From Takakia lepidozioides (lineage: Eukaryota > Plantae > Bryophyta): DNA of 64,000 nt. How positions within the stretch are numbered: the stretch's first letter is position 1; each line of letters begins with the position of its first letter. Made by a program: the position numbers and the translations under genes. Below are positions 1,991 to 61,215 of this stretch, piece by piece. The stretch lies in NCBI GenBank assembly GCA_030704615.1, contig CM060731.1:18910001-18974000 (forward strand), given 5' to 3'. The notes under the pieces were generated by a model. That model did not search any database and was not told the DNA's origin. It saw only the letters and a list, made by a program, of their open reading frames with translations.

Positions 1991-2199
1991 AGGATAAAGA
2001 GAAACCAATAAATGGATGATTTTTCAAGTATATTTTGCATGAAAGTAGATCCCACTACTCTCAGAAGGGGAAGATATGTAATAGATTTGAGGTAAGAACT
2101 TAATGCACACTCGCAACCTCTGACAGGACGGTACGCTGGTTTCCCGCATGTCAAATATTCCCCACCCTCTTGTTGAGAGAGAGAGATGGAACTGAAGGA

Positions 2200-2390
2200 G
2201 TGTAAACTCCAGTTGAGGTTGCACTGGGTTACATGGTGGGGGTTGTAACTCTGCTTGGGGTTACACTGGGTATAACTCTGCTCAGGATTACACTCACATT
2301 TGGTCTCGAAATTTGACTGTCTAAATTTGGCTAAGAATAAAATGGACTAGGAAGAGTTACACAAGACACTGGGGTTACACTACAATAACC
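2200..2390. repeat. Cluster of short direct and inverted repeats (TGTAACTCTGCT / GGGGTTACAC)
   Basis: GGTTACAC-like and TGTAAC/TATAACTCTGCT motifs recur several times upstream of the S28 gene. Confidence 0.5.
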
Positions 2391-2519
2391 TCCCGTCAAG
2401 AATGAAACCCGAAATCTCGCGAGGTAAGAGGGGGTGGGGAGGATTTGACAGGGCCCCCACCGGAGGAGCCCAGGCTGCTGGAATCCGGCGAAAGTACCGC
2501 TATTATCTCCTATCTCGCA

Positions 2520-2615
2520 TACGTAGCTGCACTGTGCGCTACGCCAGTGAACTCTGGGTTCAATTCCTGGCTGCCTCGCTGGGTGTGGTTTTGTTCCTCG
2601 GGCTGGTTTCCTTTT
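2520..2615 (+). mobile_element. tRNA-derived SINE, family A, internally deleted copy
   Basis: TGCACTGTG..GGGTTCAATTCCTG (B box), then GGGTGTGGTTTTGTTCCT as in the 62259 copy, ending CTGGTTTCCTTTT like the family 3' end. Confidence 0.5.
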
Positions 2616-2933
2616 AAGAAGAATATCCAACATTCGGGTGATAAGCATGCTGCCATGGAACGGGAAGATAAAGCAAAGCTCCGACAGCACTCGTCGCTTC
2701 TCCACACGATCGTTGCATTCAAAATCCTGCTTCACATCTTCCCACTACCCAAGTTTCGATGACGAAGTCTGGGGAATGGGTTTATGCGATCTTCAGGAAC
2801 AGAACAGTAAATTGGGGAGAGAGACATGCGAAGTAGAAGAGGCTGAGGTGGGTAGAATCTGTGTGCATTTTCCAACAACGATGCACAACGAGGTCAGACA
2901 GGCAACTGCGAAGTGGGTTGTGCAGTAAGCGCA

Positions 2934-5900
2934 ATGGCGATGCGCAGTTGTGTAGCATGGCTGCTCATGTCCTGCCTCATTATCGGTACTCAAGCGCTGC
3001 CTGCATTTCTCCGATCTTCTTCGGACAGCTCCGGAAAGTACTTGACTCAAGATCCGCTCTGGTTTTCTCAGCGTCTGGACCACTTTGCTACCCAGGTGTG
3101 TGTCTCGTCTCTCTACTCCTTCTTTGCATTATTCCGTGTATGTGGTGTACACTAGGTGGTGTTGGTGGCAGTGGAGCCAGTCACATTGTCACCTCCGTGC
3201 CCCTCTCACCCTTCTGGCAATGCAAGCCCTGGAATCAACAAACTTTTCCTGGAACGGGATTGTAGTTGGCTGGTGCGAGCTGTTGTTTGTACCTGGTGTT
3301 CGCCAACGCCCGATTGCTTTGCGGGGGTTGGAGTCATGTGGATTACACAGGCAACACTCGCGGGAGCTTGCGAATGAGTGCATTTTTGTGATTTATTTCT
3401 ACAATCTCTACCCTTCTCTTGGCCCACCCTTTTCTATTTCCACACTTTCAATCCGAAAGGGAATGTAGCATTGGATTGTGATCCATGCGGTCACAAGTGG
3501 GTGAACTCTCGGAGTTCTCTGCAAATCTAGATGCACATTGGTTGCTGGTTGACATTCGATTGCCTTAAGGCTCACCTCTTCTGGAGCTGCAGCTGTCTGG
3601 ATTACGATCTCAAGGAATTCCTGGAGCTTCATTTGAGTAATCTCTACTATATGAGCTGGCCAGCTGAAAACTATCGGATTAGAAGTATTGTCACCTTTTC
3701 AAGTGCGCAAATGCACTGTCCCCATAATGGTTTGGTGATCTCAGTAATTCTGAGATTGTTGCTCATATACATGGGAGCTTAACCCTTACATGGATGTGCA
3801 AATTTGTTAGGCTGACCTGAGGATTTAACTGAGAAGTGCAATAGAATGTCGTCCTTTGCAACCTGCTGGTCAGAATTTGACATCTGATTGGGGATATTGT
3901 CACAAGGTGGGACTGAGAGCTGGAAAAGTGTTACATTTGTCGTGCAGCGCTGGATGTATAGCGCCAAAATGTGTGAAACTATAGCATCTCTTTCTTCCTG
4001 CAGGACCGGCGCCAGTTCCAGCAAAGGTACTATGAGTTCTTGGATTATTTCGAAGATCCCCATGGGCCTATCTTTCTGCGGATCTGTGGTGAATCCACCT
4101 GCTCTGGCATCAGCAACGACTACAGTGCGGTGAAAACACCAAACCCCCCTCACCCCCTCCCCAACCCTCTTACTTCCCCCCTACTTTCTCCCCGCCTCTC
4201 GGTTCTCAGTCAGATCGATGGAAAGGTGGACACCTGAAAAGTTTTAGAAAGGGGACCAATGAGCGGCCATCAAAAGAAATATTAGGTTTTTTTCTGCCTT
4301 TCTGTTACTGTACTCTTTCCATCTCACCCTCCTCTTGAGTCCCTCTTTCTCCGTCAGGCTGTGTTTCTTTCAGACCTGTCCAACATATACTTTCCGCCCT
4401 TCTATTTCCACATAGAACTGGCTGTCAACCACAGTTGTCTTGGGTCTAGCAAGGACAGTGCTGTATCAACATCATGCTACTGAGTCTGGTGTCAATGCCA
4501 TCCCGTAGATCCCTGGGACTGGGTTGCATATGTGCCTGGTGGGTTGAAATGAACAATGAGTACATCTATCTCTCACAAACAGAATTGTCTTTTTGCTTGA
4601 AACAGGTGTTGGCTAAGAAATTTGGGGCAGCTGTGGTCTGTCTAGAGCATCGGTACTATGGAGAGAGTTCTCCCTTCCCTGAACTGACGACTGACAACCT
4701 CAAGTATCTGTCATCAAAACAGGCTCTTTTTGATTTGGCAGCATTTCGTAATTATTACCAGGTTTCTTTCTCCTGATGCATTTGCCGAGTTACTTGCTTA
4801 CAATAACGGGATTTTCGCTATAGATCTCCAGCTATCATACTGTGTGTCACCGGTGGTACCACAACACATTAAGCATTCGAATCAAGCACTGGATGTGTGT
4901 TACTTGACATGTCATTTCGTGCCCAGTGTTATAATGTTATAACCCTTTGCAGAGAAGTATAAATGGTAGTTATGGTGACTTTGTAAATGATTTGTGTTTT
5001 TATTTCGCTACTGGACATCAGTGTTATTTCTGTAGAGACAATGGATGTGTGCTGCAGCGGCATATGTCCAGATATATCCCACTGAGAGGGCTAGCATGAT
5101 GCAATCTAAGCTTTGGTGTCTGGCATGCAGGGAGTGGTCAACAATAAGTACAATAGGACTGGAGGGGACAATGCATGGTTTGTATTTGGAGTGTCATATC
5201 CTGGAGCACTAAGTGCATGGTTTCGGCTCAAGTTTCCACATTTGGTGCGTGGTAGCCTGGCAAGCTCAGGGGTGGTCCTTGCAGTCTACAACTACACTGC
5301 GTTTGATGAACAGGTACAGTTGAATGTGCCTGGTACTCTAAAAGCGATGTTTGATTTGCATTGCAGGCAGGCAGGAGAGGACTTGGTAATGTAATCTACT
5401 CGTTTGGTTTTTGTTCTATGTTCAATATGCTGTCAGTAGATCACGGTTTATACCCGGAACACAACTTCTGCCATCCATTGGTGGGGTTATAAAGGTTCAT
5501 TGTGTGGAGGGCCTCGAACGTGCCATTCACCATGCAATATGTATGTGCTAGGGTGAGCAGAGCTGGTGGTAGAGCTCAGCCCGAACTGTCATGCTGCTGT
5601 AGGAGCACATTTAGCAGTTCATATTTGGGTAGATTTCGTAGGCACAGTTGGTGGGTCCAGCAGTCCACCACCTGGTTCATGGTAGTATGAGATTGTGCAC
5701 CACTTGACAGGTCCCCAGCAAATGCCTTTGCGGCTTTCACTTGTTTTGTAGAAGGTGAGATATTGAGGATTGATGTTGGTCTAAGTTTTGCAACACATGA
5801 CGTCACAGTAATATACTGGTTTCCCGCTTACAGGTCCTCTCTCTTTCTCTCTCTCGTATTGCATGGGTGCAATGGGCTAAAATTCATGTGGCCAGCATGT

Positions 5901-8900
5901 GTCCCTAAGATGCAGCTCTCTGCAGACAGCAAGTTTGATGGTCGTAGCACCTGTGAACTTAGAGGGAGGAGGCAGGTGGCTTGCATGAGAGTCACATGAT
6001 TCCGGCTGGGAGTGCCAGGTGGCCGTATCTGCAGGGCCAGCATGTGCGAGTGCACTACGAGAAGTGACTGCGGAGGTTGAGGAGGGCTTGGCGCGCAATG
6101 CAACTGAACTGAAATGTCTTTTTGGTGCTGAGCAGGTGAGTCCCTTAGGGCCTCTGGGCCCCCCTTGGAAACTCCTTGAAGCTCGATAACCACTCAGAAC
6201 CCTTAAATTGTGGTCAGATAAGACTGTCCAAGGTTTCTAGCTAGAGGGCAAGTAACCGTGATGAGGGACTTCGATGCTTGTTTGAGCAAAGTTTCTAACA
6301 GGACAGGGGGACTAAGAATTTTCTGGATGGAGTCACCAACTCAAATGCAAAGTGGTTGACGAATTCCTCAAGAAAATTCAATGAACAAAAACTACTGGAA
6401 CATCCATTTTGGCATGTCATGTTTCATATCTTAGACTTCCGTGTCCACAGCTGGATTGCATGTTGTTGTTCCCAAGAATGTGATAACTTCAAGTAGTTGC
6501 ATGGTTTTGGGGATGATACTACCAGATCTCGCTTCTCAGCTTTCTGTGTGGTAATTACTCATATGAATGATTTGTTGCTGATGCTGGAGAAACATGTCAT
6601 GCATGGTACAGCTAAAAATAGATGGAGACTTCCTCTACTTACTGGCAGATGCTGCGGCGATTGCGGTAAGTCTTATTATACTGGCTACAGGCTATCTCTA
6701 TATGAACTAACATCTTCAGAGCATCTAATGTGCACTAGTCATCTTTGATCACCGCAGAGCCAGGGTTTTAAGGAACATAGACTTCAGGCGTGGTGATATG
6801 CTTGATAGCTAAATAGTCCCGATAGAGATAAGTTGCTACTGTGCTGTTGAACATCCTTTCAACTCAGTCCAGGGACTGCAGTTTCTATTCTGAGATCAAG
6901 GACATTTGTAGGAATTACATCAGTCAGCACTATTTTGACTCGTGCTGTTTGTGCAGTTCCAGTATGGTAATCCTGACATCCTGTGTTTGCCCCTAGTGGC
7001 GGCGTATACACCTGGCCAAGATGTGCTGGTATGGGCTGTTTATGGCTTTCTGGTGTAAAAGATAAGACAGGATTTCAGAGAAAGAAGAAACCTCCTTGTT
7101 GGTGTGTCTTTTTCAAGAACTCAGTGAAGTAGCCTTAGTGGAGAGAGAGAGAGTACAGATCTACACCTTTAACTTGGGTTGGACATCAACTTGAGAACCT
7201 GCTAAGTACACCATACTTGACGATAATTGTTCTGAAACTTGAGCAATCCCCTATAAGTTGCTAATGGGTTTCCTGAAAGAAGGACAAGCTTATGCAGAGA
7301 TTCTTTCTGAAAGGGCAGCCAGTCGGTGTCGAAGAGTCGGTTGTAATTGGGAAATTTCAGAATTGAGTAAAACCTTTTTGGAGAATTCAACCAACTCAGT
7401 GCTTGATCTTTGTGGATGGGTAAATTGTGCAGGGGGCATATGCTGAATATGTTAAGTCAATATTTTTTGGACAGTTTGGCTCATCACCCAACACCTATGA
7501 TCAGGAGCATCTGAAAATTACAAAAGCTGGGCCAGATACTGGTAGGTAACTGTGCTATCCATGTTATCTATGGTAGCAATGAACATCGTCTGTGTTTATG
7601 TTGTATGCTTCCTTATCAGATCCTTGGTATGCTGCTCAATTCTGCTCTTTTGCTTTGCAACATTTGTGGTTGTTGGGCAGGAGATCGGCAGTGGTGGTAT
7701 CAAGTGTGCACAGAGGTGGCGTATTTCCAGGTGGCCCCAGCTAACAACAGCATTCGCTCATCTGGTGTTAATACAAAGTGGGCATTCCCCTTCCTTGTTT
7801 GTAACCGCTCATGGAGAATGTTCTTTTGCAGAGTCCTCAGTGTCAAACTCCAGCTGTAGCCAAGCTAGTATCCTTGCCTAGGTAAGTCTTGCCACTACAG
7901 CAGGTTCTAAGGAAATGACGATGATTGGCGGGGCGTTGTTTTCTGTCTAGACATATTTTGCCATCAGAAACTGCTAGGCCTAGATTGAGTCAGATGATTT
8001 TGCCAGCTGCTGTACAGACATGGAAGGGTTCTCATGTGGGTGCCAACTGCCTTCAATGTCAGTTTCCCAAGCCCCACAGATGGAATAAGTAGATCAGTGA
8101 CAAGAGTACGTAGGTGAATGTGCCACTAGATGCTGTAGAAGTTTTTGAAGAAATAGAGGTTTGATGCTGCCCAGTCTCTGAAGGTCCCTTTCTGGCTTTC
8201 CTTTGGAAGAGACAGTGCTGCTGACATTCAGTTATCTCTGACTGCAGATACCATCTAGACCTCTGCGCGAACGTATTTGGAGAGGGGACATATCCGGAAG
8301 TCGACATAACAAATCTTTATTACGGGGGCTCTGGAATCACTGGTATGGGTGGTACTAGTTGAATTCTAGCTAGGATGCAAAAAGATTTCAAAAGATTGGC
8401 TATTGTGAAGTTGGCAATACAAAGATCCAATTTCATCGACACAAACGACTAAAATCATCCGCAGACATGGTACAACATTAATTGCTTGGTGATCTGCGGG
8501 TAGTCTCCATATCTCCCACCTGAGGAAAAAGTCTCTTTTCTGGTGATTAATTGAATCTACTAAACTTTCAATTCTAGGTTTGTGTATAGCATGGATATGA
8601 GCATATTTTAGTTAGGGTCTGGTGCTAACTCTGTGCTTCATCTCATGATGTTCCTGGATGATCAAACACAGCTTCCAAGATATTCTTCACAAATGGATCA
8701 CAGGATCCCTGGCGCCATGCTTCTAAGCAGACCTCATCACCTGGTGGTAATGTTCTTCTCTGTGGCTTTGAGGCTCAAGTGACCTGCCAGGGCACAACAG
8801 CTGGGTGGATTTGGGGTTCCACAGGGGTACTCTCTGTTGATGTGTAGGCTTCCTATTTTGTGCAAGAAAAGATTGCACCCATGAGATTTTGTTTTCGTAA

Positions 8901-10363
8901 GCTTGTGGCCATAGGCCCTGTGCCCAATTTGGGCGGAACAAGAGGGGTAACTGACACTACCTTTGTGAGGGGCTCACTCCCACAAGCATCAATCTGCTTT
9001 TTGGGAGCAGCCCAAAAGTTAGACCCCAGGGCCAGGGCTTTAGGCTCAGCCTCAAGAAGGGAGGTTAGGTTACATCTCATGGATGATGTACTCGACCGTT
9101 CCCTTGGAATGTGGGCTATGCCATACGATATTGGCGTACTTCCTGTAGAATACCAACCCCATTAGAGCTGATTGTGGGGTTTCAGCTCACTAGATTATGT
9201 GAGAACACTCCCTCCGGTCCTCCACACATGATCTGGTTACAGGTTGGCGTGTCCTTGGACAATACGATGCTCATTGCTGTCAATTTGACCATAGTCAGTG
9301 ACTCTGCCAGTCACACTTAGTCTTGGGATGGGCAGCATACCTCATCAAGAGAATGTACTCATAAGATGTTGTTTGCCGTAGCCTTGTGGCCATTGACTCC
9401 GCGCTAGTTGGAGTGGAACACAAAGGGACAGAAAGTACCTTTGTCAGGGGCTGACGCCGGTAGTATGACTTAACTTGAAACATGCAATTGAGCCGAGTTT
9501 TCCAGATATCCTCTAGAAACAAACATCAATCTGCTGTGTGTGATTTGCCCAATAACTAGATCCCAATAGGGCCTGGGCTTTTGGCTCATCAAGAGAGAGA
9601 GATGGAAAGGGGCCAAGGCCGGTATGCACATAGTTCATTGGCAGTATTGATAGTTGTCTGTATGGTGGATGGTGGGACAGAGCCAGCTCATACAGTGACT
9701 TGCCACAACTGCGGACATGGCACAGACTTGCGGGGATGTCCACAATCCCCTCTGCAAATAGAAGGTTGGTCATCCTGGATACTAACTGGATCTAGTGATT
9801 GGAGTATTTATTCTACATTACTGGGTAAATATTGTGTCTGTTTTAGTGTAAGCAACTGATGTGGGACACTGGTACGTTTTCTTTGTCTCTTTAGCACTTC
9901 TCTCAACATAGAAGTGATATCCCCAAACGGTTTCCAAATAGCACGAGACGTAACAACAATTCCTTCTCTCATGTCCTTTGAAGATTTTTTTAGTAGAAAT
10001 GCACTTACAAGGACTGATGATGCATTTTGGGTGTCCTCACGTTAAATCGTGGGAGTCCCCTGTGAAATCCAGGACAACGTTGATAACAGTTAACCTGGAG
10101 AGGCCAAGTGTGTAATCTTGATGTGCTCTAGGTAAGAGCGAGCAAATTGTTTGTGCAATTACTTGACACCTACATGCATTTGCATCAATACAGGGGATGC
10201 AACCAAGTGTGCTAGGCCTGATGAAGTGCACAAAGTGCGGCAGCTTATTGCTAACTACATTGAAGCGTGGATCGGGGATGAAGATACACTCTCAGTGTCA
10301 GAGGAATCACCTTCGGCACTGAAGGTCTTTGAACCTTCAGAGTTCTCACCAAATTGCAGGTAG
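2934..10363 (+). CDS. EDA2: Serine carboxypeptidase family S28 (EDA2/prolylcarboxypeptidase-like), secreted, 13 exons
   Basis: Exons 2934-3095, 4004-4129, 4606-4761, 5131-5313, 6019-6135, 6612-6665, 6957-7028, 7433-7541, 7681-7777, 8248-8342, 8672-8746, 9681-9764, 10194-10363, all GT-AG and phase-consistent. Signal peptide and motifs [27 protein letters not shown] (nucleophile Ser), NGSQDPW (Asp), CGHGTDL (His). Symbol is a family-level assignment. Confidence 0.93.
8873..9190 (-). mobile_element. Short insertion family B, older diverged copy in S28 intron 11; far boundary uncertain
   Basis: Colinear similarity to 9353-9584 over about 8873-9048 (TTGTGGCCAT, GGAACA, TACCTTTGT.AGGGGCT, CATCAATCTGCT, GGGCTTT.GGCTCA). 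No TSD found. Confidence 0.55.
9353..9584 (-). mobile_element. Short insertion family B (probable non-LTR retroposon), 232 bp
   Basis: Flanked by the exact 12-bp duplication CTCATCAAGAGA (9341-9352, 9585-9596). The first ~55 bp are nearly identical to 27293-27349. Strand is inferred from the fixed shared end. Confidence 0.75.
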
Positions 10364-13570: not shown

Positions 13571-16500
13571 ATGGCAACAACACTCAGGTCGTGGTATGGT
13601 CTGCTCGTGGCATTGGTACTAGGCCTGTTATGGTTTTCAGGATGTGCGAAAGCACTCTCTACAACTCAAGTTCAGGGGCTTCTCCGCCTACAATCGGTGC
13701 TAGAACACCCATCTGTGACAGCTAACTGGACCTATGCAACCGATTTCTGTAACCTGCCGTCCGCTCCCGCTCTTAACATCTCCTGCATCGGTGATACATT
13801 GACGCACCTGCGAATAGTGGGGGACATGATCGACCTTTCCATCACAGAGAAGCTCGAGTTAAACTCCCTGGGGGCCAACAGGTCACTGTCTGCTGCTTAC
13901 TCTGCCAACACCTTCGCCAATACTCTCTTAATGTTTCCAGACTTACGTATTTTAGAGCTCATATCTGTGGGCTTGTGGGGGACCCTTCCTGGTAAATTGG
14001 ATCGCATTGCCAACCTTCAGGTTCTTAATGTCAGCTCGAATCTCATCTCTGGGTCAGTCCCTAGAAGCCTTGGGAACTTGGCAGGTCTGCGAGTTTTGGC
14101 TATGGACAACAACGTTCTGAGTGGGTCGTTTCCATATTGGTTAAGCACCGTGCAAACGCTGGAAACACTCTCGCTTTCCAACAACCAGATTTCAGGGGGA
14201 GTGAATGATACCATCTCCTACTTCTGGAACCTTCAGACTCTCTCCTTAGACCACAACTTGCTAAGTGGTTCACTCCCTAGCTCCATTAGTTCCTTGCAAA
14301 ATCTGAACTTCCTGTCTCTTTCGTATAACCAATTCACGAGCTCCATCCCGAATTTAGACAGTCTTGCAAACCTTCAGACTCTTAGAGTCGACGGGAATAG
14401 CTTTGGACCCAGCTTTCCGCTTCTTGGGAGTCAACTTGTGTCTTTACATATGAGTCATAACAAGCTATCAGGTCCAATCCCCCCCTATTTGGAGAGCTTT
14501 TCAATGCTGAAATCATTGGACTTGTCCTCTAATGCCCTCACTGGTATTCCCCCTCTTTCTGTTTTCGCCCTGCCTAGTATTGCATCAGTGAGTCTTTCCC
14601 ACAACCGTCTCAGTGGCACCCTTCCATACAACCTCTTTATGAGCAAATCTCTTTTTTTCCTTGATGTTTCATCCAACTTTTTCTCTGGAAAGCTGCCACT
14701 AGCCTTTCTCCACCCGAAGGGCCTAACTGTCAACTTTCAGGACAACTGCCTTTCAACAAAGGTGCAAAGGCAAGAGACGAGTGGATTCTGTACAGCTAGT
14801 GCTACAAAGCTTGGACTCACAAGTGATTCCCATGAGAGCCATCGCATTACAATTATTGCCGTTTCCATCGGAGGAGGGTTGGGCCTGCTGTTGGCGATTG
14901 CTGTATTGTTTCTCCTTTTGTTCAGGCGGTTCAAAAGTGATAAGGATAGTACGGTAGGGCCAAATGATGTGGCCTCCTTGGCGGGATCAATTGGAATCCC
15001 TTCTGAACTTCTCCTCAATGCAAGTATGTATTTCACACCATTGCTTGCAGTGTCTGATTCGAGGTGTTTTCTTGGTTTCTTCTACGCCTATGACTACTAA
15101 GTCTCCCGCTGTGTGTGGGAGCCGATGTTGGGATTTATTCAATGTGGGGAGTTGATTGAGAAGAAAAGGGAGGAATAAAGGGAGCTGTGCCAAATATGCT
15201 CCTAAAGAGCCTAGAAGCATTTGTTGATTGGTCCTCAGTAGGGGTGCAGCTGAGGCTCAGGTCAAATGTGTGAATTTGGCAGGGATTAGGCAAGCATGTG
15301 AAGATGGCTACCTGATCACCTTGAAGAAATAATTTTTTATTTTGTGTGATCTCATTTTTTGTCATACAGGGTATATTTCCCAATCAAAGAGGCTAGGCGT
15401 GCTACCACCAAGGCAGAATCGTGTGTTCACTTTAGAGGAGGTCAAGAAGGCTACCAACAACTTCAGTGCAGCTACACTTGTGGGTGAAGGCAGCCTTGGC
15501 AAGGTGCATACTTTAAATCTACATGTGGTTTATCAGCTAAGTAGATTGATGGAAGTAAGAGACTGAGGATTTCACATTTCGAGCTATTGCAGCCCTGTAA
15601 AAGAGGCATGCAGCCAAACTCTGCAAAACCTTATGAAGAGCCAATTAGAGGTTAAGCAGACACTTGATTAGTATAATGGCATGAAGTTCAGATGGGAAAA
15701 TGACATACAAATCCTGTCAGCACTCACCTTCGACAGTCTAGTTTCATATGGACATGGATAACATCTATGAATGCACACAGTTCAGTCGTCCGCATGCCTT
15801 GGTTTGAATGGGATTGGGAGTTCTGACTCTTACACCTAAGTATTATGCTTAGGAGGATTGTCGTTAAGGCAATGTATATGCGACCGCACACATTGGTGTG
15901 GCCAATGGTTTAGTGATGCTTTCTATGGCACATGGGAAAGTTGTGTTACAAGTTTCAGAATCAAAGTTGCTGGTAAGCCTACTGGATTTGTGCAGGTGTA
16001 CAAAGGACAGCTCGAAGATGGAACAGATGTGGCTGTGAAATGGGTGGTTGTCAAGTCACAGGAAGACCTGGATGGGTTCAAGACACAGATAGATGTGCTC
16101 TCTAAGCTCAGGCACCGCCATCTTGTGAGCCTCCTTGGGTACTGCACATCAGAATTCTTGCAGGAAGGTGAACAGGAGAATGACAAGTTGAAAAACTTAT
16201 TCATTGTGTCTGATTTTTTGAAGGGTGGGACACTTCGCAGCCTTCTGGCTAGTAAGTCGTTCTCCCCAACTATGTTGTTGTGTTAATGCAGACAAGGTAT
16301 ACTTGTGAACAGATAAGATCCTAGTTGTTCTTAGGTTACTGATAGAGATAGATTGCTACCTGCCCACCATTCTAGAAGCCACAGCTAATATATATCAGTT
16401 ATGATATCCCATGTACACTATTGTGCACATGTTTAGAGAGCTAGGACCTATGCTGACATCTCACCCCCATCATTTTGTTGGTCTTCCGTGGCACAGAGCG

Positions 16501-19288: not shown

Positions 19289-21332
19289 ATTTCTGGTAGT
19301 ATGGACGTTTTGGTAGCTTCTTCAGCTGGTGCACGTATCGGTTCCACCTCAGTATTTTTCTCTCGTTAGATCTCCAGTGTAACCGGCAGCTCATCCAAGC
19401 CGGGAAAGCAATACTGCTGCACTGTTTTACAGAATTGTCACTGCTCTAAGTACGGATCCCTCTCAGTACGGGAAAGCCGCTGAATGTCAGTGAAAGATTG
19501 CGCGATAATTGTAAATTGAGCAACTTTCTGATTCATTAGCAAAAGCGAAACTCTCTAACTTATCTGCAGCGCCACTTCCTTGGAACAGATACACTGTGCA
19601 CTTCATAACTGCATATGTTGGAAAAACATCCCGAGACTGCACATCTCTGCCTGTTTTCTACTCCACTCACTGCACATCACTGCCTGTTTTGTTATTCCGA
19701 GGATTTTACTATACAGTCAGTCCATTGCATCCGAGCTTCAAACATTTGTCTTGTGTAAACTTTACACTACCTACTCTGTCCTTCCGCACTTATATAAATG
19801 ATCCCTTTCTCCAGTCTGAGACTCTGAGGCCACTGTCCTCTTCCTCTTCTTCCTCCTCCAACATGTGCAACTGAAACACGCATCCTTTTTAATCAAATTC
19901 TATGTAGGAAAGGGACCCACCTGGGCTAATCATTCTGAATCTACCAAAAATGAATTGGGATAAGTCATTTATACTTTGTCGGATTGCCCTGCCGCTCACA
20001 TGATTACACAGCTTGGGCGTTTTGAAGCTCCAAAAATACATACATACGTACAGCCACATGGGAGTAGTCAAAGTGATGAGACTGTTTGTCTCAATGAACA
20101 AGCAATGAGTGCACAACCCGCATCCACTTGAGGCAACTTCTCAAGTATATCATGTATGACAAACATGAGTCAAATGAACTGACTTCTGACCGTAGTCAAT
20201 GTTGAGAATTTGTCCTCTCCACACCACATCATATGTGCTGCCTTGCATGAGCAAACTCCTGCCTGGATTCCGTCGGGCCCATCGCAGCGAATCCCAGGAC
20301 CCACATTCATCTTTTCCTTGCCACAAGATGGGGAGAAAAAAAATGTTTGGTACAAAGACTCGAACAACAATTGCATTGCAAGCTTGCTTCACCTAGGTAG
20401 CTCGGCCCACCATCCTCCTCCACAGTGTAGAACAGCAGCATGTGCTCGGTGCCAGGGTGGCATGTGCTGGCCATGGATGAAGGTGACAGAGTGCAGCAGC
20501 TCACGATGCAGGCCTGCACCTACACAAGTGTGTTGAAGGACTGATTCAGTGGTGTTTGGACTTTAGTGCCACTGTGGGCCCCCCTTGCTTCTTCCATTCA
20601 GATGTGCAGTCTGCGCACTTTCCACACCTTCTAGTAAGCATCTCCTATTTAGCATCATAGCGAGCTAATCCTGAACAAGTTAGACTGAGATACAGTATAC
20701 AGTACGTATATATGTAGGGATGCTGTGAGTATCTTAGGGAGGTGTGTTTGAACGGGGTTGCTTTTTGTGCATGGGCGGTCCGTTGGCGTCAGGGTTCTGG
20801 GCTCTCCTCCATTTCACTGTTTCTGCCTCTCTCTGCATTAGTGTGGAGTTGGTGAGAGACAGGAGCACCTGGGTTTTGTAACTGTGGGCTGCTATGTGCC
20901 TGTTGGGCACAATGTGTGCACGTTGTGCAAGTGGGAAACTTGTTGCAGGGGAAGGCATTGGCACTGAAACGCTCGGGTGGGTTGTGGGTCACTCGTGTTG
21001 AGTCTGTGCTGAAGTGGAGGGGTGAAACGGAATCTGGGTCAGCGTCGGTTGTGGTGGACGCTGTGGCAAATGTGAAGCCAGAGTTCGTTGTTCTATGCTG
21101 CCGATGAGGGTAGACCATGGGCTAAATGTTCTTGCTGTGTTACAAGTGCACAAGGTCCTCGTGGAGGTCTCCTTGGTGTGGCAAGATGACATAATGCTAA
21201 CGAAGTCTTTCACGGGTGTTTCATCTCCTACATTGCTTGCGACTGCAAGTCTTGGAGCTGCGACACAAGGGTGACGCTCTTGCTTTTGAAATTCCAGTTT
21301 TACAGGTGCAAGGTGCTGTGGCTTTTGCGAGC

Positions 21333-24300
21333 ATGCCCGGATCCTCACCTTCGAGAGTATCCCAATCTCACGACTATGACCCAGACTCTCCTTCTGTAGG
21401 CGTGAGGCCTGGGCCGTGGCCACCAAGAATGGAACCCTTGCCTGCCGACCATAGTTACAACCCGAGGGCCCTTGGTTCATGGGCCCGTCGCACTGGTTAC
21501 AAGAGCAACATGTCTGGAGAAAGCACCGCTACTGATATGGAGATCAACATGCCAGATGTTAGGCAGGGTGGCGCACTGCGGGCACCTAACTATGTTGAGC
21601 CGACAGCTGCCAAAGACGTCGAGTATGGCAGAAACGGCAATGCCAATGGATTGAAGGATACTGACAAGATGAGGAGTGTGCCTCCAGCTGCAGGATTGCG
21701 AGATTCCAGTCTGGGCATTGCTCCAGGACCTTTTATTCCTGGAAAAAGAGGGACTGACTCTCCAATTGTGAGTGGTGTCCAGAGCAGTGTGGCCAACAGT
21801 ATGCCCAACAGTATGCCCAGCAGTATGCCCAACAGTATGCCCAACAGTGTGCCCAACAGTGGGCAGCTCCGAATAGAGCCGCTCAGAATGTACAAAGATT
21901 CTGATGCTGACATTATGTCTCAGTCTCAAGATGCTGATGATTTAATGATGTCAAAGCACTCTCATATGAAATATGAGCTTCGAGAGACCCCAGGACTCTG
22001 TAAGTCTATCAGCTTGTCTTCCTCATTGCTCATGCATGTCCACCTAGTCTTTCTCTACGATTCCCTTTCCCCCCTACGGCAGCTAACCTACAATGCTGCC
22101 CGGTCGCTATCTCTACTCAGTTTAATGTTTTCCATCCCCTGTTGTGTTGCTGTACTACATATTATCTGGCCATCCGCCAGGGCATGGAAATGATGCCAGC
22201 TACTTCAGATTACTGGTTTTCTGAAAGTGTGCATTGTAGGAGTCCCAGAGGGTTTTTTCAGTTGTTTCCACATGTGCCTCCCGCCAGGGGCAAGCAAACT
22301 ATGACTGTGGAATCTTCTCTAAGCCCTTCCAAAGTAACAATCTTTTGTTTTGCTTTAGACATACCAGTGGGGGACCCTCTGTGTCTAATAGACCTAAAAT
22401 GTCGGAAATTTCTTATTATCCTTTGCAGGTTCTCGAGTCTGATTTTTCGTTTCTGCAGTATTGTGCCAAGTATGAGGCCGATCATGTTTGCATTATTTGC
22501 TGAGTGTTCTTGACATAAAGCTTTGAACTTGGTGTTGTCAATGAATGCACATTTTTACAGAATGACATGAAGCAAGTACGGCACAACTTATTGCTATTGA
22601 TCAAATCATATTAAGCTGTGGCATCAGACATTCTGGTATCTTAGAACTGTATGATCAGTAAATACAAACAATTTAATATTGTGCCATGTGTAAAGTATTC
22701 CTCAGACCCTATGTTTCTGTGCCCCGATGGCACCTGCTTACATGCCTTCCTTTTGTGGTTAATTTGCAGTTCCCCTGATTCTTTACGGCATTCAGCATTA
22801 CTTCTCTATGGCTGGCTCGCTAGTCCTGATTCCACTTGTGCTTGTCCCAGCAATGGGTGGTAGTAGTGTGAGTAAACAGCCCTCTCTCTCTTTTCTTCTA
22901 GCTGCTCTTTCTCCCCCTCCTTCGATTGCTGTCCTCTGGGCCTTCTGTGGATGTGACAAATGCCTTCACTGTTCTCTACCACAAACCCAACTGAGTGCCC
23001 ACTTGGCTAGTTGAAATATGCTCTCTCCCAGAAAGCTTTTTGTGGAGGTCATATCACCTTCATTTCTCTCTCTCTCTCTCTCGCTCTGTCTGCTCTATCT
23101 CTGTCTTTTGATGTAATTTCCCACGCCCCCTAATAGACTTACTATCTGTAAAGTTATATTACATTATCTTTCTTCTTCTCTGTTTCTTTCAATCCTTCTA
23201 CATACACTGATTATTTCTGGGTCACTGGAAGTCTTAGGGGTGAGGCTGTTGCTTTGTAGTGGAGTCATGCTTCTTTTTGTCCCAGATTTTGTAAATCTAG
23301 GGAAGTTCATTACATTTGCTATATCTAAGAGGCTGCACAGTGTTACTAATTTGAAATGTCTTATTGTGCTCCAGAAAGATACAGCCAGGGTTATTTCAAG
23401 TATGCTTCTGGTGTCAGGGATTTCTACGCTGCTACATTCTTTCTTTGGATCAAGATTGTCCCTTATCCAAGGGGCATCATTTGTGTACCTTGCTCCAGCT
23501 CTGGCAATCGTTTTCTCTTCTGACTTTACGTTGCTAAATGCGGACGTAAGTTGGCTTCCCTCTCGCACTGCTATTTCAGTGCAATGCAGTGAAAGGACCT
23601 GAGGGTGGTAATAAGGCCCACACTGTCTTACCTGATTCAATGTGGCATGTCTGATAAAGTTTGTCACCATTGCAGCAAGTTCTTCCTGTTCATCCAGCCA
23701 TTTTCTATTCCATTCTGGACGCATACTTTAGTTGTAGACCTGTTCAGGGGGTCTGTACTTCTTGGTGTTGCTTGATTTGTGACGCTTACCTTAGATTTGA
23801 GGTTTCAACTCCCAGCCTTCTTTGCAGTACAAGTTTCAGTACAAGTAAAACCCTTGGCTAGCATGACTAATGTTCAGAAACTTGGTGAGGTGGGCATCAC
23901 CATACAATTTTAAATTTTATATGCTACAGACAAGCAAATTCAACCTGTAAGGCAGTCATGACCCACTATAGGCATGGATGTCTTATCGCTACTTTGCAGA
24001 GATTCAAGACCACGATGAGGGAGCTGCAAGGGGCTATCATAATTGCTTCTGCTGTCCAAGCTTTACTAGGCTACAGTGGTTTCATGTCTATCCTGCTCAG
24101 GTACTGTAACATGTCAAAATCAGCACAACTTTTTCATGTTCATCTCTTTGTCAGCTCATGTATCAAATCTGACTAAATCTGTCACACATGGTCTGACAAA
24201 TTTCAGATTGTTGAGCATATATATTTGCCACTTGTAAGTGGCACTCCTCGCAGTAGCTGGGTGCAAAGTACATGAACATGTAGTACGTGCAAGTGCGTGT

Positions 24301-27300
24301 AGTTCATAGTACGTGTAACACACTTGCACGTAGTTCACACACACTTGCATTGCACTTGCACGTGAACTGTACGTGCACTTGCATTTGACAGCAATTTGTT
24401 TAATTTGATACTGTTGGTAAGTGCCAAGGTTCTCCTCATGGTAAATCCTTCAACCTGCAAAATTGGAAGGATTGGAAATTGAGTGTGGAATATCACAGAT
24501 GTTTAGGGGCTTTGCATTGAGTGGCAAGGTCTGAGTGGCTATCTATGGATGGAGATGCAGGGTGATCAATCCAGTAGTTGTGGCACCAACTGTGGCAGCA
24601 GTAGGACTGGCCTTCTTTGCATATGGTTTTCCAGTGGTTGGCACCTGCGTGGAGATTGGCATCCCCCTAATCATAATTGTTGTGTTTTTTTCGCTGGTAA
24701 GTGGTTGTGAGACACATGGCCTGATGAAACTCATATCTTCTGGGTATAAGATGTCGATTATGCTGCTGATTTTAATGAATACCTTTCAGGCGGAAATCTA
24801 AAGATAACCTAGTGCCACTCTTTTAAGACTTATTTTCGGGAAGGCTAAGCTAGAGTGCTGAAGAGGAGGATTTAAGACTACTGAAAGGACCTTACAGTGG
24901 AACTGATGTTTGTTTTAGATCAATGCCAAATGGTGGTGGAGAAGTCGGGCTCAACCAGATCCATCTTATAAACTTCCTAGCTAAATGAACTACTGACGCA
25001 GCCAACCCGCTTGATATTTCTATGGACTAGAAGTAATTAGCTCTTTCTTCTGTTTTTACTTAACAAGACCAATCTATTGACTTCAAGTGTTTAACCTAGA
25101 GATGTCTTGTGGTTTTTTCTTGCAGTATCTACGCAAAGTTGCAATCTTTGGTCACCGGATTTTTCAAGTATATGCGGTGTGTACTGGGGTCCTCTTACCT
25201 CAGAAAATATTAAGATCTGGCCTACTAGCTTATATGTGTAAACTTGAGCTGCACATGGTTGTAGTTGCTTCTGTCCATCTCTCTTTTTCTACCAGCTCCA
25301 TTCAATTCTTTTAATATCATATTGTGCTGAATTATTGTGTTAATTGGTGTGCCTCTTGCGTGTGCTTGGCAGGTTCCTTTGGGTCTGGCAATAGCTTGGG
25401 CTTATGCTTTTCTACTCACGGAGAGCAATGTCTACACCTACAAAGATTGTGATTTCAAACAGCATAAGAATGTGACCGCTGTTCTCACGCCTGCTTGTCA
25501 GAAACACCTGTCCACAATGATGCACTGTCGGACTGATACTTCCAATGCACTCAGCTCCGTACCTTGGTTCTGGTTTCCATACCCATTCCAATGGGGCACT
25601 CCAACGTTTCATTGGCACACAGGAGTGGTCATGATTGTAGCTTCAATCATTGCTTCAGTGGACTCGGTAAGTAGGCTTGGTTGTTCAAACTGCCAGCAGT
25701 ATACAGCATGGCTGTTTAACTAAAGATGATCACATGCATAGCACCTAAGATCTCTTAGGATGGTGAGCAATACATGCGTGAGTGGTGGCATATGTTGCTC
25801 CTAGGCCATGGTTAACAAGAAGCCTTACTGTGGGCAGTGCTTGTCACAAAGAGCCTACATACTGATCCACAAAGTCATACTTTGTGAGGAATGTTGAACT
25901 GATGGTGATGAACATTAGCCTTACTCATCTCATATTTACCAGATGCAATGTTTTAACTTATTGATTTGTGATCTTTTAGGTGGGATCATACCATGCAGCA
26001 TCCCTGTTGGTGGCGTCAAGAGCTCCCCCTCCTGGTGTAGTCAGCAGAAGCATAGGACTGGAAGGCTTGACAAGCATATTAGCAGGGTTCTGGGGCACTG
26101 GAGCAGGGGCCACAACACTCACAGAGAATGTGCACACAATCGCTGTGACCAAGATGGGCAGCCGCCACGCAGTGGAGTTTGGCGCATCAGTGCTAATTGT
26201 TGCGTCCATTATTGGTGGGTACTTCCTTCTCAATGTTTGTCAGGGGATTTGAATAGTGGTATGCTCATTTTTTATGAGAGCTCATTTGTTGACACGAGGG
26301 GCCATTTTTTTGATGAACGTAAGCACTGGGAGTTCCCTTCATTGAAGTTTATGCTAGTCAATTGTTCACATGGGTGCTTAACATGGAGATTAATTTTGTA
26401 TTCTTTGAAATGTGGCACCGCTGGAGATTCTCGCAGTGATGTTGTTTTGAGCTTTTATGCACTGTGGGAAAGAAACAGTAGTAGTCTCTTTGTATGTCAG
26501 AGAGAAACTGAGATTGTAGCATGGAAAACTAAGGCTTGAGTTTTGGTACACATGGTGTGTATTCCAACTTCCATCAGCTTAAGATGTTTTGAACGGAATT
26601 GTTCGTTTCTTACTATATGCTTGTCACAGTGATTGAGGTGGTCGAGCAGCCATGCAATGTTCATGTTGAAGTTGCTTCTGGACCATGCAACTACATCGGT
26701 TGTTCGCTCTATGGTTTGGAGGTGTAGTAGACTCCCAGACAATTCAATCCACTCAGTCTGTCGCTTCTGACCGAAAAACTTTCCGACCTGTGGAATGGGA
26801 AAGCTGTCTTATGCACGTTGGAGCTCTCCATGAATCTCAGCTTGCCATTCTCCACTTTTGTGCTGATGGTGCAATTGATGGTTGCTCATATGTGCAGGAT
26901 TCAAACAGATATAGCACTGGTCTTCATGCAGATTCATCTGAGTACCCTATTTCTTTTTTGTGCAGGGAAAATAGGAGGTTTCATTGCGTCAATTCCACAA
27001 GTGATCGCTGCAGGGCTGCTTGTGGTGATGTGGACAATGCTGGCAGCTCTTGGCCTCTCCAATTTGCGATACAGCGAAACAGGGAGCTCTCGGAATGTCA
27101 TGATTGTTGGCCTGTCTCTCTTTCTCTCCCTGTCAGTACCAGCATATTTCCAGCAGTACAGTGTGGGCAGTAATCCAACAACAGGAGTGCCCAGCTATTT
27201 CCAACAGTACACTGTTGCTGCCCATGGTCCCTTCCATACCAAATTCAAAAATGTACTCGTCTCAATCTTGGACCCCTTGCATGCATAATAGATTGTACTC

Positions 27301-27725
27301 ATAAGACGTTGTTTGCCGTAGCCTTGTGGCCATTGACCCCGCGCCCAGTTTGCATGCATAATAGAGAATGGTTTCTGGCTTCTTTTATAAGAGGTGAAGG
27401 AGTTGAGTAGTGTGTTTGGGGCTTAGAGGAAGAAAGGAGCAGGTGGAGGAAAGGAGAGCGACGAGTCTATGTTTTCTGAAATGGATGGGTGGTTTTTGTG
27501 CAGGTAAATTTTGTGCTCAACACCATACTGTCTCTGCATATGGTGATTGCTTTTGTGGTTGCTTTTTTCCTAGACAATACAGTCCCAGGCAGCCGGCAGG
27601 AGAGGGGTATCTATGTATGGAGCAAAGCCAGAACTGCCAGGAATGACCCAGGTGTTGTGAAGGACTATGGATTACCATTCGGATTGGGTAGATTTTGCAC
27701 GTGGGTAAGGTGGGTTGGCCTGTGA
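21333..27725 (+). CDS. NAT12: Nucleobase-ascorbate transporter (NAT/NCS2 family, NAT11/NAT12 clade), 10 exons
   Basis: Exons 21333-21999, 22770-22867, 23375-23545, 24000-24100, 24561-24696, 25126-25176, 25373-25666, 25980-26214, 26966-27252, 27504-27725. Motifs SWARRTG, HMKYELRETPGL, YGIQHY, signature ENVHTIAVTKMGSR, LDNTVPGSRQERG, plus the long N-terminal extension typical of NAT11/12. Confidence 0.95.
21792..21860 (+). repeat. Coding 12-bp tandem repeat (CCAACAGTATGC) encoding (N/S)S(M/V)P about 5-6 times
   Basis: Directly visible; translation ANSMPNSMPSSMPNSMPNSVPNS. Confidence 0.9.
27293..27349 (-). mobile_element. Short insertion family B, 57-bp truncated copy in the last NAT intron
   Basis: Flanked by the exact 16-bp duplication TTGCATGCATAATAGA (27277-27292, 27350-27365); near-identical to 9353-9409. 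Confidence 0.8.
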
Positions 27726-28484
27726 TTCTGTACAAAGATCGCAATAGAAGTAGAAGTATTGACAGCTGTAGATTTTAATTGTTACTGAATGAAATTCCGA
27801 GCTGAAATTCAGATAAGATGTGGGCTGGGAGTAGGGTAAAGATTAGCACAAAGATATTAGGCCACGACTCCTTTCACATCCCATGTTTTTCTTACCTGCA
27901 TTATGAAGCAAAACAAAAGCAGTTGATGTTCATGTGATGGTGAAAACGCCCATGCAGTGAGTGTAATGTTGTTGAGTGAATGGCTGGGTGGTTCATACTT
28001 CATACAGCCGCAGAGGCCTACTGTAGAATGTCTGGCTCACTCTTCATAGAGAGCTCTATTAGTTGCTATTGCTTGGTTAGCCGTCAGTGCTGTGTTACTG
28101 CCCAAATTTTGCACATGCCAACTGAAGTGCAGTATATAAGAGCCTCTTCCCCTTGCCTACATAGTGTTCCTTATTTCGCAAGAAACTGAAATCAATTCGG
28201 CCATACCTTGACTTCCTTGCATGAAATTAGCCATGTACAAGTGTAACACAAGAAGTATGAGTGTACTTATTGTTATGAAATGATAGAGTTTTGCTGTGGG
28301 TTGTGGCCCTAAATCCTCATGACCACCCCATGGTTGTTCTCTCCGCGGTCCTCTTTGCAATCTTATGTCAAAGTCCTCTGGCCTCCTAAGAATGACAAAG
28401 ATTCTGAACAAAAGTCCATAAGAGAGGTTCACAGGGTTACATTGAATACCTACCCAAAAAGGGGTGGTGAATATCTAAATTTAA

Positions 28485-29714
28485 CCCTCAAGTGTCAAAA
28501 CTCATTTTCACCCTCTCGTGGAAAAACATGACCCTGGCCCACAAAAGAAAAATTATCTATAGAATCTCTGTGTCCCTGTAAAACTGACCGTTGGAATTAC
28601 TTTCCACCTACCCCACCTCCTGCCACAAAAAGTTTCACCAAAATCCAACTGCCAGATCTGAAGATTATGAAGTGTAGAGTGGGGACAAAAAAAAATCTCC
28701 ACTAAGAACTAGGTGCCAAAAAAAAAACAATTTTTTGCTCGTATTTGGGCATTTTTAATTTTTTCTGTTGAGAGTCTCAAGAATGTTGTTCCATACCTGA
28801 TAACACACATTCTCATAAAATTTCAGTTTTTTCTGAAATGTTCTCAAGTGGGCTCCTTTGTAGTGACAAATTGGGGGGTCAAAATATGCCATTTTCTTTG
28901 GGCAGGCCAAAATATCTCTTCCTAAAATTATACAAAAAAATTCAGCCCATCAATCCCTAATCCCTCCGGTTGAAATGTCATGAGCTTCCATATGAAGTCC
29001 CCGAAAAACTTTGAGGCCAATCAGCTAATGCAACGCATCCTTAGGTTCCCTGCCCAAGACTTCAAATGGCACACCTTTGGTATAGCCTGCAGGCCTAGGA
29101 TATTTGGAGCCGTAGCCCATAAGTGCGCGGGGTTTGGGAATTCCTCTGGCTACCGGGCCCTGCTTTCATGGGGGGCCACTCCACCCTCAACCCTCTCAAA
29201 CCCCCGCCCTAGGTTTGGCCCACCCCTCGTGGCGTTTTTCTCGAGCCCCGAGCTCTGCCGCCATCGCGGCTGCACTCCCTCCAGCCCGCCCTGCATGGCG
29301 TTAGCCGGAGCTGCCATCGCCGTGGATTCAGGCTAGGGCCCAGGCCTGGGAATGCCCAGACCTGCGCCGGGCGCCATGCCCCTGCCGGGCAGTCAAGGGG
29401 TTTGGGGGAGCGTGCCGCCCTAACCTTTATGGGTATCTTTCAGTCACCCTAACCTGACCGCAGTTGCCATGTCAGCAACTTGGGCAGGTTAGGGGGGCCA
29501 AATTGGCCTCAAAAAGCTGAGTGTTCCCCCTTCCAATTGGTTCAGACCCATACTTCTTCAGGCATTGACCAATTGGCCAATGCCATATGGAGGGGGACCC
29601 GATTATCTGTCGATTGAGCCAAAAAAAAAAGGCCAATCAGCCTTAACCACAGGAAGTTATGGCTGGTTAAAGAAACCTAACCGATCCAAAACGGGTCGGT
29701 TTGACACTTAAGGG
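28485..29714. mobile_element. Non-autonomous piggyBac-like TIR element, 1230 bp
   Basis: TTAA on both sides (28481-84, 29715-18). 15-bp TIR CCCTCAAGTGTCAAA / TTTGACACTTAAGGG with one mismatch. No transposase ORF recognised inside. Confidence 0.8.
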
Positions 29715-30127
29715 TTAAGAGAGAATTGACTCAAGATTCATGAAAGATTGGATATGTGGGTTCCATGTCTATCCATCCTTTACTGAAGTGTTTATCACAC
29801 AAATTCCATAACTGAAGCGGCCGTAGGCAGCCGGAGTTTCATCTGGCGAGGTTTCTCTTGGTACCCCCCAGATGGTTTTAGGGTGTAAGGTTTAAGGCCA
29901 AGTGATGAGAGCGCATGCTCGAGTGTTAGGATCGAAGATAAAGAGGGAGGGAGGAAGACCTTCAGCCGATTGAGTACCTCTTACCAACGTTCAATCAGTA
30001 TTGTAGAAAGAGACAGAGAGTGTGTTTGTGTTTGGACGCGGTATACGAATCTCTGAACCATTTCTGCAGGCTGTGCACAAACCCACTTGGGTAAGCATCA
30101 ATATTGGCGTGTCACAGAAGGGGAGAA

Positions 30128-33100
30128 ATGGTAACTGGAAGTCCAGGCCTGCCTGCAAACAATGTAATATGTGTACTGGCAGACCCAGAAGGACGAACTT
30201 TAGGATCGCCGCTGGATCTACCACAGGATGCTGGTCCTAGGGAGCTTCATTTGCTCATCAATAGTCTGCTCCAAAATGTAATCTAACTACACTCACCTTT
30301 TGCATTTCTTTTCAACCCACAGATGCTTCCCGCGTTGTGTGATTTTCCAGTTCTGAATGCGATCCATCGACAGGGAGGATGGAAATCCCTCCGGAAAGAC
30401 ACAAAGATTTGTCGCACCTTCTAGGCTGGGCACACAAAAAATTTAAGCCTGCAACCGGATTGTCATAGGCTGCCTGCGAGGAGTAATGCAATATTGAGCT
30501 GAGTGCTATATCCTGGGGGTTGGGATCCACATAGTTGGATTGGAAAATTAACTCTGCACAAGGATTCCTACTCCTTGGGCATTCCTCCACGCCCCCCTCC
30601 CCCACCACCCCCGCCCGTCTCTTTGGAGCTCGATTGTTATCTCCCAGCCTGGGCTTTTTAAGGAAATTCCTTTCTTTCCTTCTCTGCCTGAAATTGCAAG
30701 ATAACTGCTTGCAAGAGGGAAACACCCTAAATCAAGCCTTACAATTCAAAAACCTTGATGGCAATTTGGGCAAGCCAAGAATGCCTTCACTGGCAGTGCA
30801 GCTCACCAGGGGAGAGCAGTGAAAATGAATCCCAGCAAGTGGGGCAGAAGAAGTAGAATCTGCAACACACCAGTACTCTTCCTTCAATGGATGAGATGGG
30901 TGCTGGGGACGATAATTGTGACAATCATAAGCCTCTCTGTTTTGAGCCAACTCGGCTTATCCTCCTATTGAGAGTGTAGTTTTTCTCTTTCTTGGGGCAT
31001 CTCTTGTTCTTTCTCCCTCTCTCTCTAAGACACACACATTCAGTGGTCTTTTGCCACGCTTTCAGAAGTGTTTTGGTTTGAAATGTGTGTGGACTGGTTT
31101 TTCAAGTTATCTTTTTTCCCCTTCTGTTCTAGGCTTTCTGCTAATGGATTAATGGCAGGACGAGAAGCTGCCCTATGCGTTTTACATCAATGACAAAGAG
31201 CTGGTGAGCCAGCTTGGTGTTCATTTGCTAGAAAATAAAGGTGAACACTCTGCTTTTTAAAATTTTGAGGGTGGATTATGTTTTTTGCTAGCTATGATGG
31301 CAGCAAGAGGATATTGAAACTTGCTTGAATTATTCCTGGTGGCTAGACCCTACAACTTTCCCATTACACACTTAGCAGCCTATGTGCCTAACATTTGATG
31401 AGGGACCTGTTGCCATTTTGTAACATCAATCTACCTGAAGGTGGATAGTGGCTATCATTGCAGCGAGGGAATTTGACATAGTTAACAATCATGTTGTTTG
31501 GCAGTGTCGGTGGAGCAGACTCTGCAGATAGTGTATCAACCACAGGCAGTGTTCCGCATCAAACCTGTCACTCGTTGTTCTGCCACCATAGCTGGTGTGT
31601 CTCTCATCGTTACCATGTACCCTGGAATACTGATATTTGCACCCTTCACGCATGGTGCTGTATGATGCTTGACCCTCATGTAAAGCAAATTGTTGAGGTA
31701 ACTCATCTAATATAGACATTTGCTACCGGAAATATTTCAAACTCAAATTAATTTCAAACTTGCAGCCAAATTAACCATCGTTTTGAGAACTTCCATATGA
31801 CCAGGAGTTGAGAGTCCGGCATTTGCCAGTCAAAGGGCATCATCATCATTGAAGTCATGAGCGTTGACTAATACCTGTGTGATATCAACTCAAGGGCTTT
31901 ACCATCTTAAGAGCTTCAAATTGGAAAGAAGGAGGTTATGTGTCATGGCTGAGGCATGGCAATGGATGGGATGTCAGGACATGCTGAGGCAGTGTTGGCA
32001 GTGGCATTCAGTCCAGACAGCCAGCAGCTGGCCAGCGGGTCGGGCGATACCTCTGTGCGCTTCTGGGACATCTACACCCAAACTCCTCTCTTTACATGCA
32101 CTGGTCCGTGTCAGCACTCGCTTGCTTCTGGTTATTTTGGTCCACATTTTTCAATAAGATTCAGATGCATGTAGTTTGTGAGGGTGGCTATATGGTTAAC
32201 TAAAGTGTAACTGTTGTTTTTCTGAAGTGCCTGCTGTTAGGAAGCACATGATACATGTTTTCACCTTTCCAATATGCAAGAACGTCACCGATGCACGAGT
32301 GGTGACACAAGGAGGTTGGGAGGCTGACCAGGTGTATTGGATCAGGACACCGAAACTGGGTTTTGTGCATTGCATGGTCACCTGATGGCAAGCAGCTGGT
32401 GAGCGGAAGCAAAGACGGAGAGCTCCGCCTGTGGGATCCTACTACTGGCCAGGCTTTGGGCAACCCATTGACTGTATTCCCCGTCTATCTTGACTCAACT
32501 TGGAGAGAGTGTATGATTGATTAAAGAACTTTGAAAACTTTATGTTGGTGCCTATATTGCATCCCCTAAAATTGTCTTCAGATTTGAGCAAGAGCTCCTG
32601 GGTTCCTAAATCTTCATGTGTGTTTGCTTACAAATGTCCTGCAGTCATTAGTCTTGGAATTAGTGATTGTTCATAGTGTTATGAAACTGTACAGCACAGA
32701 CAAATGAAAGTGATGTTGTAGTTTTGTATGGGCCAAAGATTGGTGCTAATGAATGATTACTTGTATTTGAGTGTGGCAGGGACATAAAAAGTGGATAACA
32801 GCCGTGGCATGGGAACCAGCCCACCTGCAGGCACCATGTCGGCGGTTTGTGAGTGCTAGTAAAGATGGTGACGTACGCATCTGGGACACAGTGCTACACA
32901 AGTCAGTGCTCTGTCTCAGTGGGCACACATTGGCAGTAACTTGTGTCAAGTGGGGTGGTAATGGACACATCTACTCCAGGTAAGCCTGCTGATTCTCATT
33001 GTCTGGCAGCTGGACCTTGTCTGGAAGTGCAAGACATATTCCTTCATGGCGTTGGATTTTGTGGTTGATGCAGTTCACAGGACTGCACAATTAAGGTGTG

Positions 33101-60937: not shown

Positions 60938-61215
60938 AGTATTTCCCAAATACTAAGAAGAGTTTCTCAAAGCGAAACCCACTTCTGCATAGTATTTCTG
61001 AAATATCAGTAAGAGTTTCTCAAAGCGAAACCCACTTCTGCATAATATTTCTCAAATACCAGTAAGAGTTTCTCAAAGCGAAACCCACTTCTGCATAGTA
61101 TTTCTCAAATACCAGAAAATGTTTCTCAATGCGAAACCCCCCGTTGCATAAGTTTGTGTCCATATCACCAAGTCTGTCTCAAATACCAGAAAGGGTTTCT
61201 CAATGCAAAACCCAC
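60938..61215. repeat. 53-bp tandem repeat, 4 adjacent copies plus a separated fifth
   Basis: Unit AGTATTTCTCAAATACCAGTAAGAGTTTCTCAAAGCGAAACCCACTTCTGCAT with period 53 (60961 to 61014). An inverted partial copy lies at about 61300-61350. Confidence 0.9.

Follow-up and report, generated by a model that had tools for sequence, protein, structure and literature searches.

The 64,000-nucleotide stretch of Takakia lepidozioides DNA analyzed here (the window) contains, in a spacer between two genes, a segment that is bounded on both sides by TTAA and by a short inverted repeat, and the question it raises is whether this is a mobile element and, if so, which kind of transposase would have placed it there. 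A preliminary description, made from the letters of the window, had read the segment as a 1230-bp element with 15-bp terminal inverted repeats (TIRs) of the form CCCT..AGGG and no recognisable transposase, ending about 410 bp upstream of the NLE1 start codon, and had taken it as a trace of a piggyBac-like system with non-autonomous derivatives, possibly undescribed in this lineage.

The element occupies window positions 28481-29718, with a body of 1,230 bp between the TTAAs and a footprint of 1,238 bp when these are included (Table 1). The TIRs are 15 nt long and match at 14 of 15 positions, the sole mismatch being at position 5, where the left TIR has C and the right TIR has T. The tips read CCCTC.. 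at the left end and ..AAGGG at the right end, and are therefore of the 5'-CCC..GGG-3' type that is characteristic of piggyBac termini (CCCTYAAGTGTCAAA ends, in shorthand); when read inward, the right tip starts CCCTTAA (CCCTTAAGTG). TTAA, the piggyBac target site, is present on both flanks of this copy, the one copy that was read from end to end. Beyond the 15-16 terminal nucleotides that they have in common, the two ends are unrelated, and a palindrome is found next to the right TIR, covering nucleotides 14-36 from the right tip, with a calculated fold of -9.1 kcal/mol (z -2.1); no comparable fold was detected at the left end of the element. The combination of a short TIR, an asymmetric sub-terminal arrangement and a palindromic site on one side is also that of piggyBac, in layout and not in sequence.

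Table 1. Positions of the element and its parts in the window.
Feature	Position	Strand	Evidence
Left TTAA, left copy of the target-site duplication	28481..28484		Sequence; with the TIR forms a 19-nt inverted repeat
Left terminal inverted repeat, CCCTCAAGTGTCAAA	28485..28499	+	Sequence; X1 unique flank contig stops at 28509
Whole non-autonomous element, 1,230 bp, without coding capacity	28485..29714		Contig depth; Pfam, Rfam, tRNA and tandem-repeat scans
GC-rich core of the element	29100..29450		65% GC, CpG o/e 0.62
Sub-terminal palindrome, AACCGATCC-AAAAC-GGGTCGGTT	29679..29701		DNA fold; adjoins the right TIR only
Right terminal inverted repeat, TTTGACACTTAAGGG (reverse complement CCCTTAAGTGTCAAA)	29700..29714	-	Sequence; X1 unique flank contig starts at 29690
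Right TTAA, right copy of the target-site duplication	29715..29718		Sequence

The simplest alternative is that the inverted repeat arose by chance in ordinary intergenic DNA and has been mistaken for the ends of a mobile element. When the window was scanned for any TTAA-flanked 15-nt inverted pair with no more than one mismatch and within 8 kb, the ends at 28481-29718 were the single pair returned, and none was returned from 200 third-order Markov shuffles. Pairing every TTAACCY with every RGGTTAA across the window again gave the ends of the element alone. In a pattern search these two sites were the sole matches at 0 mismatches, and no further copy of the element was found in the 64-kb window, which is what a chance repeat would predict.

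Copies outside the window were evaluated from Logan contigs of four runs, which were compared with window positions 26800-31800 at 80% likeness. One run (X1) is DNA of the same organism, another (X5) is a second DNA source labelled plant metagenome, and two are guessed to be RNA. In X1, the summed contig depth was 2,100-6,400 in the eight bins covering 28470-29805 and 24-29 in both flanks, placing the element at 80-250 times flank depth, as befits a multi-copy mobile family; summed contig depth does not equal copy number and is taken here to indicate only that similar sequences number on the order of a hundred or more. X5 also contained pieces of the family, 10-20 times as deep as the NLE1 flank. 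The preliminary description had regarded single-copy ends as an outcome that would speak against its reading, and these are ruled out in the same organism because the depth of the element so greatly exceeds that of the flanks (∼26). The element is one diverged copy of a family with roughly a hundred or more similar copies, and the chance reading, which has to account for a stretch so much deeper than its flanks with its boundaries at the repeats, is effectively refuted and retains next to no probability.

The contigs also provided a view of how the copies differ. Joints inside the element skip 69, 76, 149, and 275 nt, so deletion derivatives of the family exist. Among the 39 variable positions listed inside the element, the family-depth majority differs from the window copy at 34, indicating that this copy has drifted from the family majority by at least ∼2.8% and is not a fresh insertion. 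One of the differences falls within the palindrome, where position 29685 is C instead of T in most of the other copies (2,933 of 3,011 depth, 28 contigs). This C produces a perfect 9-bp stem with the arms AACCGACCC/GGGTCGGTT, and since most other copies carry it, the palindrome is a feature of the family. No contig skipping the whole element, as expected of an empty site, was found in the four runs, X5 having no coverage of the junctions.

Zero-mismatch single-copy X1 contigs break off at 28509 and resume at 29690, both points lying 25-29 nt in from the respective end of the element. Given words of 31 letters, these breaks suggest that on each side at least one other copy shares the identical tip, the TTAA and one more base, an argument that presumes 31-letter unitig behaviour and that, at ∼100 copies, does not separate TTAA from TA. 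By the same reasoning, the C at TIR position 5 would be a feature of the family or of a subfamily, and not private to the window copy.

Because TA, TTA, and TAA are all nested within the palindrome TTAA, one copy taken alone is compatible with a 2-bp duplication or with an offset 3-bp duplication, and two groups of miniature elements (MITEs) have to be considered, Stowaway (Tc1/mariner) and Tourist (PIF/Harbinger). Both are non-coding, high-copy, TIR-bounded and found near genes, like the element described here, and TTAA includes the TA or TWA that they duplicate, whereas the symmetric reading of the element needs all 4 bp. Its tips are unlike the usual Tourist or Stowaway starts, and its length is above the usual MITE range. 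If the element were a non-autonomous one of the Tc1/mariner type (Stowaway-like), it would have duplicated TA and would have the termini ACCCT..AGGGT, with the outer T and A owed to chance or to a target-context preference. TA is indeed nested in both TTAAs, the inverted repeat runs through them to 19 nt, and the contig boundaries do not distinguish the two duplications at this copy number. However, both outer bases must then match by chance, or the target must be a wider palindrome, and the tips differ from the usual Stowaway and Tc1 starts; we consider this origin improbable. A PIF/Harbinger (Tourist-like) origin, in which 3 bp (TAA or TTA) were duplicated and the termini are shifted by a single base, is very unlikely. 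Parsing the ends as TAA/CCCT..AGGGT/TAA or as TTA/ACCCT..AGGG/TTA does give a formally identical 3-bp repeat, and elements of this type are common in plants, but the tips become asymmetric where the 4-bp reading leaves them symmetric. When the tips are kept symmetric, the 3-bp flanks differ from each other (TAA/TTA or TTA/TAA). The 5'-CCC..GGG-3' tips are also not the G-rich 5' starts that are typical of Tourist TIRs, and no transposase ORF was found in the window, nor any ORF for a PIF transposase or a Myb-like protein nearby.

Examination of the interior agreed with the earlier statement that no transposase is recognisable in the element. None of the 10 ORFs of at least 40 aa had a Pfam match at E ≤ 1, a protein word search returned no relatives of the longest (118 aa), and Rfam, tRNA and tandem-repeat scans of the element gave nothing above chance. 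The core (29100-29450) differs in composition from the window, which has 45% GC and a CpG o/e of 0.45. It is part of the repeated family, with a summed contig depth of ∼2,100-2,200, and some family members lack parts of it (the joints that skip 275 and 149 nt); it folds only mildly better than shuffled sequence (z -2.1). Within the element there is also a cluster of NF-Y-type CCAAT boxes, at 29014-29025, 29630-29641, 29561-29584, and 29502-29513, whose sites include the palindrome GGCATTGACCAATTGGCCAATGCC. GGCCAAT is present five times in the element and 10 times in the whole window, with 0.19 expected for the length of the element, and the exact 12-mer AGGCCAATCAGC is present twice in the element.

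The position of the element relative to transcripts was determined from spliced contigs of the RNA-guess runs. Those spanning 29885-30277, 31159-31238, and 31503-31595 correspond to the first three exons of the downstream gene, whose ATG is at 30128, 410 bp past 29718. Exon 1 (30128-30277), the exon that was searched, matched the Pfam NLE domain PF08154 with 25 bits (cut-off 23.4), bearing out the proximity to an NLE1 start codon that had been reported from the letters of the window. The 5' end of the NLE1-like transcript is at 29885-29891 (29891 in the second RNA-guess run), resulting in a 5' UTR of ∼243 nt and leaving the end of the element ∼167 bp upstream of the transcript start. On the other side, a spliced RNA contig of a + strand gene with a GT..AG intron at 27253-27503 ends at 27923-27932. 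The element is thus located in a 1.95-kb spacer between the 3' end of the upstream gene (∼27932) and the start of the NLE1-like transcript (∼29885). The element itself was absent from the RNA-guess contigs, save for one 161-nt low-depth piece, which differs at five letters and so derives from another copy. The CCAAT cluster, the GC-rich core and the promoter-proximal position allow, and do not show, a cis-regulatory effect. It is conceivable, and on our assessment unlikely, that the family interior is a portable promoter-like module scattered beside genes by piggyBac transposition, or alternatively that the family is still mobile.

Several other features of the window were recorded. The intron of the upstream gene contains a repeat of ∼60 nt (..TGTACTCATAAGAYGTTGTTTGCCGTAGCCTTGTGGCCATTGAC..) at 27290-27352, which is also present at 9347-9404. 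Its summed contig depth is ∼342,000, compared with ∼26 for single-copy sequence, and it is abundant in the RNA-guess runs as well. Most copies of this repeat run past 27352 with GGCGGAACAAAAGGGAAC.. and come after a (GA)n run, and a 14-nt direct repeat, GCATGCATAATAGA, resembling a long target duplication, flanks the copy at 27290-27352. No Rfam family matched, and the repeat, which is unrelated to the TTAA element, could be a SINE-like or satellite unit of very high abundance. An ORF of 509 aa at 13571-15100 (+), in a single exon, encodes leucine-rich repeats (LRR_1, LRR_8, LRR_4). Its relatives are mostly LRR receptor kinases of 750-890 aa (At3g03770-like), the best named ones being from Ceratodon purpureus (49% identity), Diphasiastrum (47%), Pohlia (45%), and Sphagnum (43%), as would fit a moss-lineage or early-diverging land plant that has no close relative in the database searched; the ORF is either the ectodomain exon of a receptor-like kinase or a kinase-less receptor-like protein. 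A tandem array at 60922-61217 is composed of four to five copies of a 53-nt unit, 68-87% alike, and an inverted partial copy of the unit is present 160 nt downstream, at 61300-61347. Two long ORFs, at 52627-53928 (+, 433 aa) and 21216-22193 (+, 325 aa), had no Pfam match.

Metagenomes were also scanned for relatives of the element. The 22-nt right end gave 0 matches, and the 19-mer composed of TTAA and the TIR gave nine, about the number estimated by chance. None of these nine loci had a partner TIR or further similarity, and three were in contigs that were dense in ORFs and bacterial-looking; we set them aside as uninformative. Positions 1862-2202 of metagenome contig L001 carry TTAA and CCCTTAAGTGTCAAAC.., followed by a 56-nt inverted partner of 75% identity that ends ..GAGTTTGATACT and lacks the terminal TAAGGG/TTAA. 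The locus could represent a small element of another eukaryote that has a comparable tip and has been truncated, or else a coincidence.

Which superfamily, then, would have mobilised the family? The one reading in which the tips are symmetric places TTAA on either side, the tips are CCCT..AGGG, and the ends have the layout described above. For these reasons we interpret the element as a non-autonomous DNA transposon of the piggyBac superfamily, mobilised in trans, with a probability of roughly three in four; the proposed membership rests on end anatomy. We infer that TTAA specificity extends across the family, of which the window copy alone was read end to end, and that the mobilising enzyme belongs to the piggyBac superfamily. 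An alternative origin lies with another TTAA-targeting superfamily, Kolobok-like, Sola-like, or new, whose tips have converged on CCC..GGG, since neither target nor tip sequence is by itself proof of the mobilising enzyme. Kolobok elements share the TTAA-specific 4-bp duplication, but their termini are 5'-RR..YY-3' (PMC9587614) and those of the element are CC..GG; Kolobok was accordingly rejected, in agreement with the preliminary description, which had set it apart by terminus type. An asymmetric end that bears a palindrome, combined with a CCCT tip and TTAA, is what piggyBac elements show (PMC7351741), and piggyBac transposases have been reported in land plants in a 2025 survey (PMC13461360). 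We judge an origin in another TTAA-targeting superfamily to be improbable, by a shade more than the Tc1/mariner one.

If the element is a piggyBac derivative, its history may be envisioned as follows. From a gene at another place in the genome, a transposase of the piggyBac type (DDE_Tnp_1_7) would be supplied, which would bind the 15-nt tips together with asymmetric sub-terminal sequences, including the palindrome beside the right tip, and would cut the element out via TTAA hairpin intermediates. Insertion at a TTAA would then duplicate this sequence. The copy studied here would have landed in the 1.95-kb spacer upstream of the NLE1-like gene, and would later have drifted from the family majority.

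The structural part of the preliminary interpretation, a piggyBac-like system with non-autonomous derivatives, stands and is extended by the multi-copy family. The suggestion that such a system is undescribed in this lineage is weakened by the 2025 land-plant report, which names 'Group 4: fungi, land plants and algae' (Nat Biotechnol 2025, PMC13461360), and by reviews of plant MITEs, which list PiggyBac among the angiosperm MITE superfamilies (PMC10004981). Elsewhere, 1,230 RepeatMasker PiggyBac pieces are tabulated for a fern assembly (PMC6890710), and zero piggyBac for a liverwort assembly (PMC12130436). A screen of 1,007 plant genomes covered 17 superfamilies including PiggyBac, and in the accessible part of that report piggyBac is mentioned only in the methods (PMC12973397). 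PiggyBac elements are therefore already known in land plants, and what is new here is the high-copy family, its defined boundaries, the one-sided palindrome and the position relative to transcripts. The land-plant record, which is still thin, thereby gains a defined family, high-copy and non-autonomous, whose clear ends consist of a 15-nt tip and a one-sided palindrome. Were the family still mobile, it would represent a piggyBac system native to a land plant, with its minimal ends defined, and if an intact transposase from this genome were found to match the ends, these would provide a native plant piggyBac donor for transposition assays.

Among known systems, the closest parallel is the Trichoplusia ni piggyBac (IFP2), which has the same TTAA duplication and the same 5'-CCCT..AGGG-3' tips as the window element, and a similarly short TIR (13 bp, compared with 15). 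[quoted passage not shown] Both elements thus have ∼16 common terminal bp followed by a palindromic site, with ends that are otherwise asymmetric. The resemblance is one of geometry and not of sequence, and on this analogy the palindrome beside the right tip is a putative CRD site. In contrast to T. ni piggyBac, the window element has no transposase gene, its TIR past CCCT is unrelated, its palindrome abuts only one end, and its host belongs to the moss lineage. The land-plant piggyBac of Group 4 shares the superfamily signature; that survey is based on transposases, whereas the window element is known by its ends, and Group 4 is the likely source of the enzyme that mobilised it.
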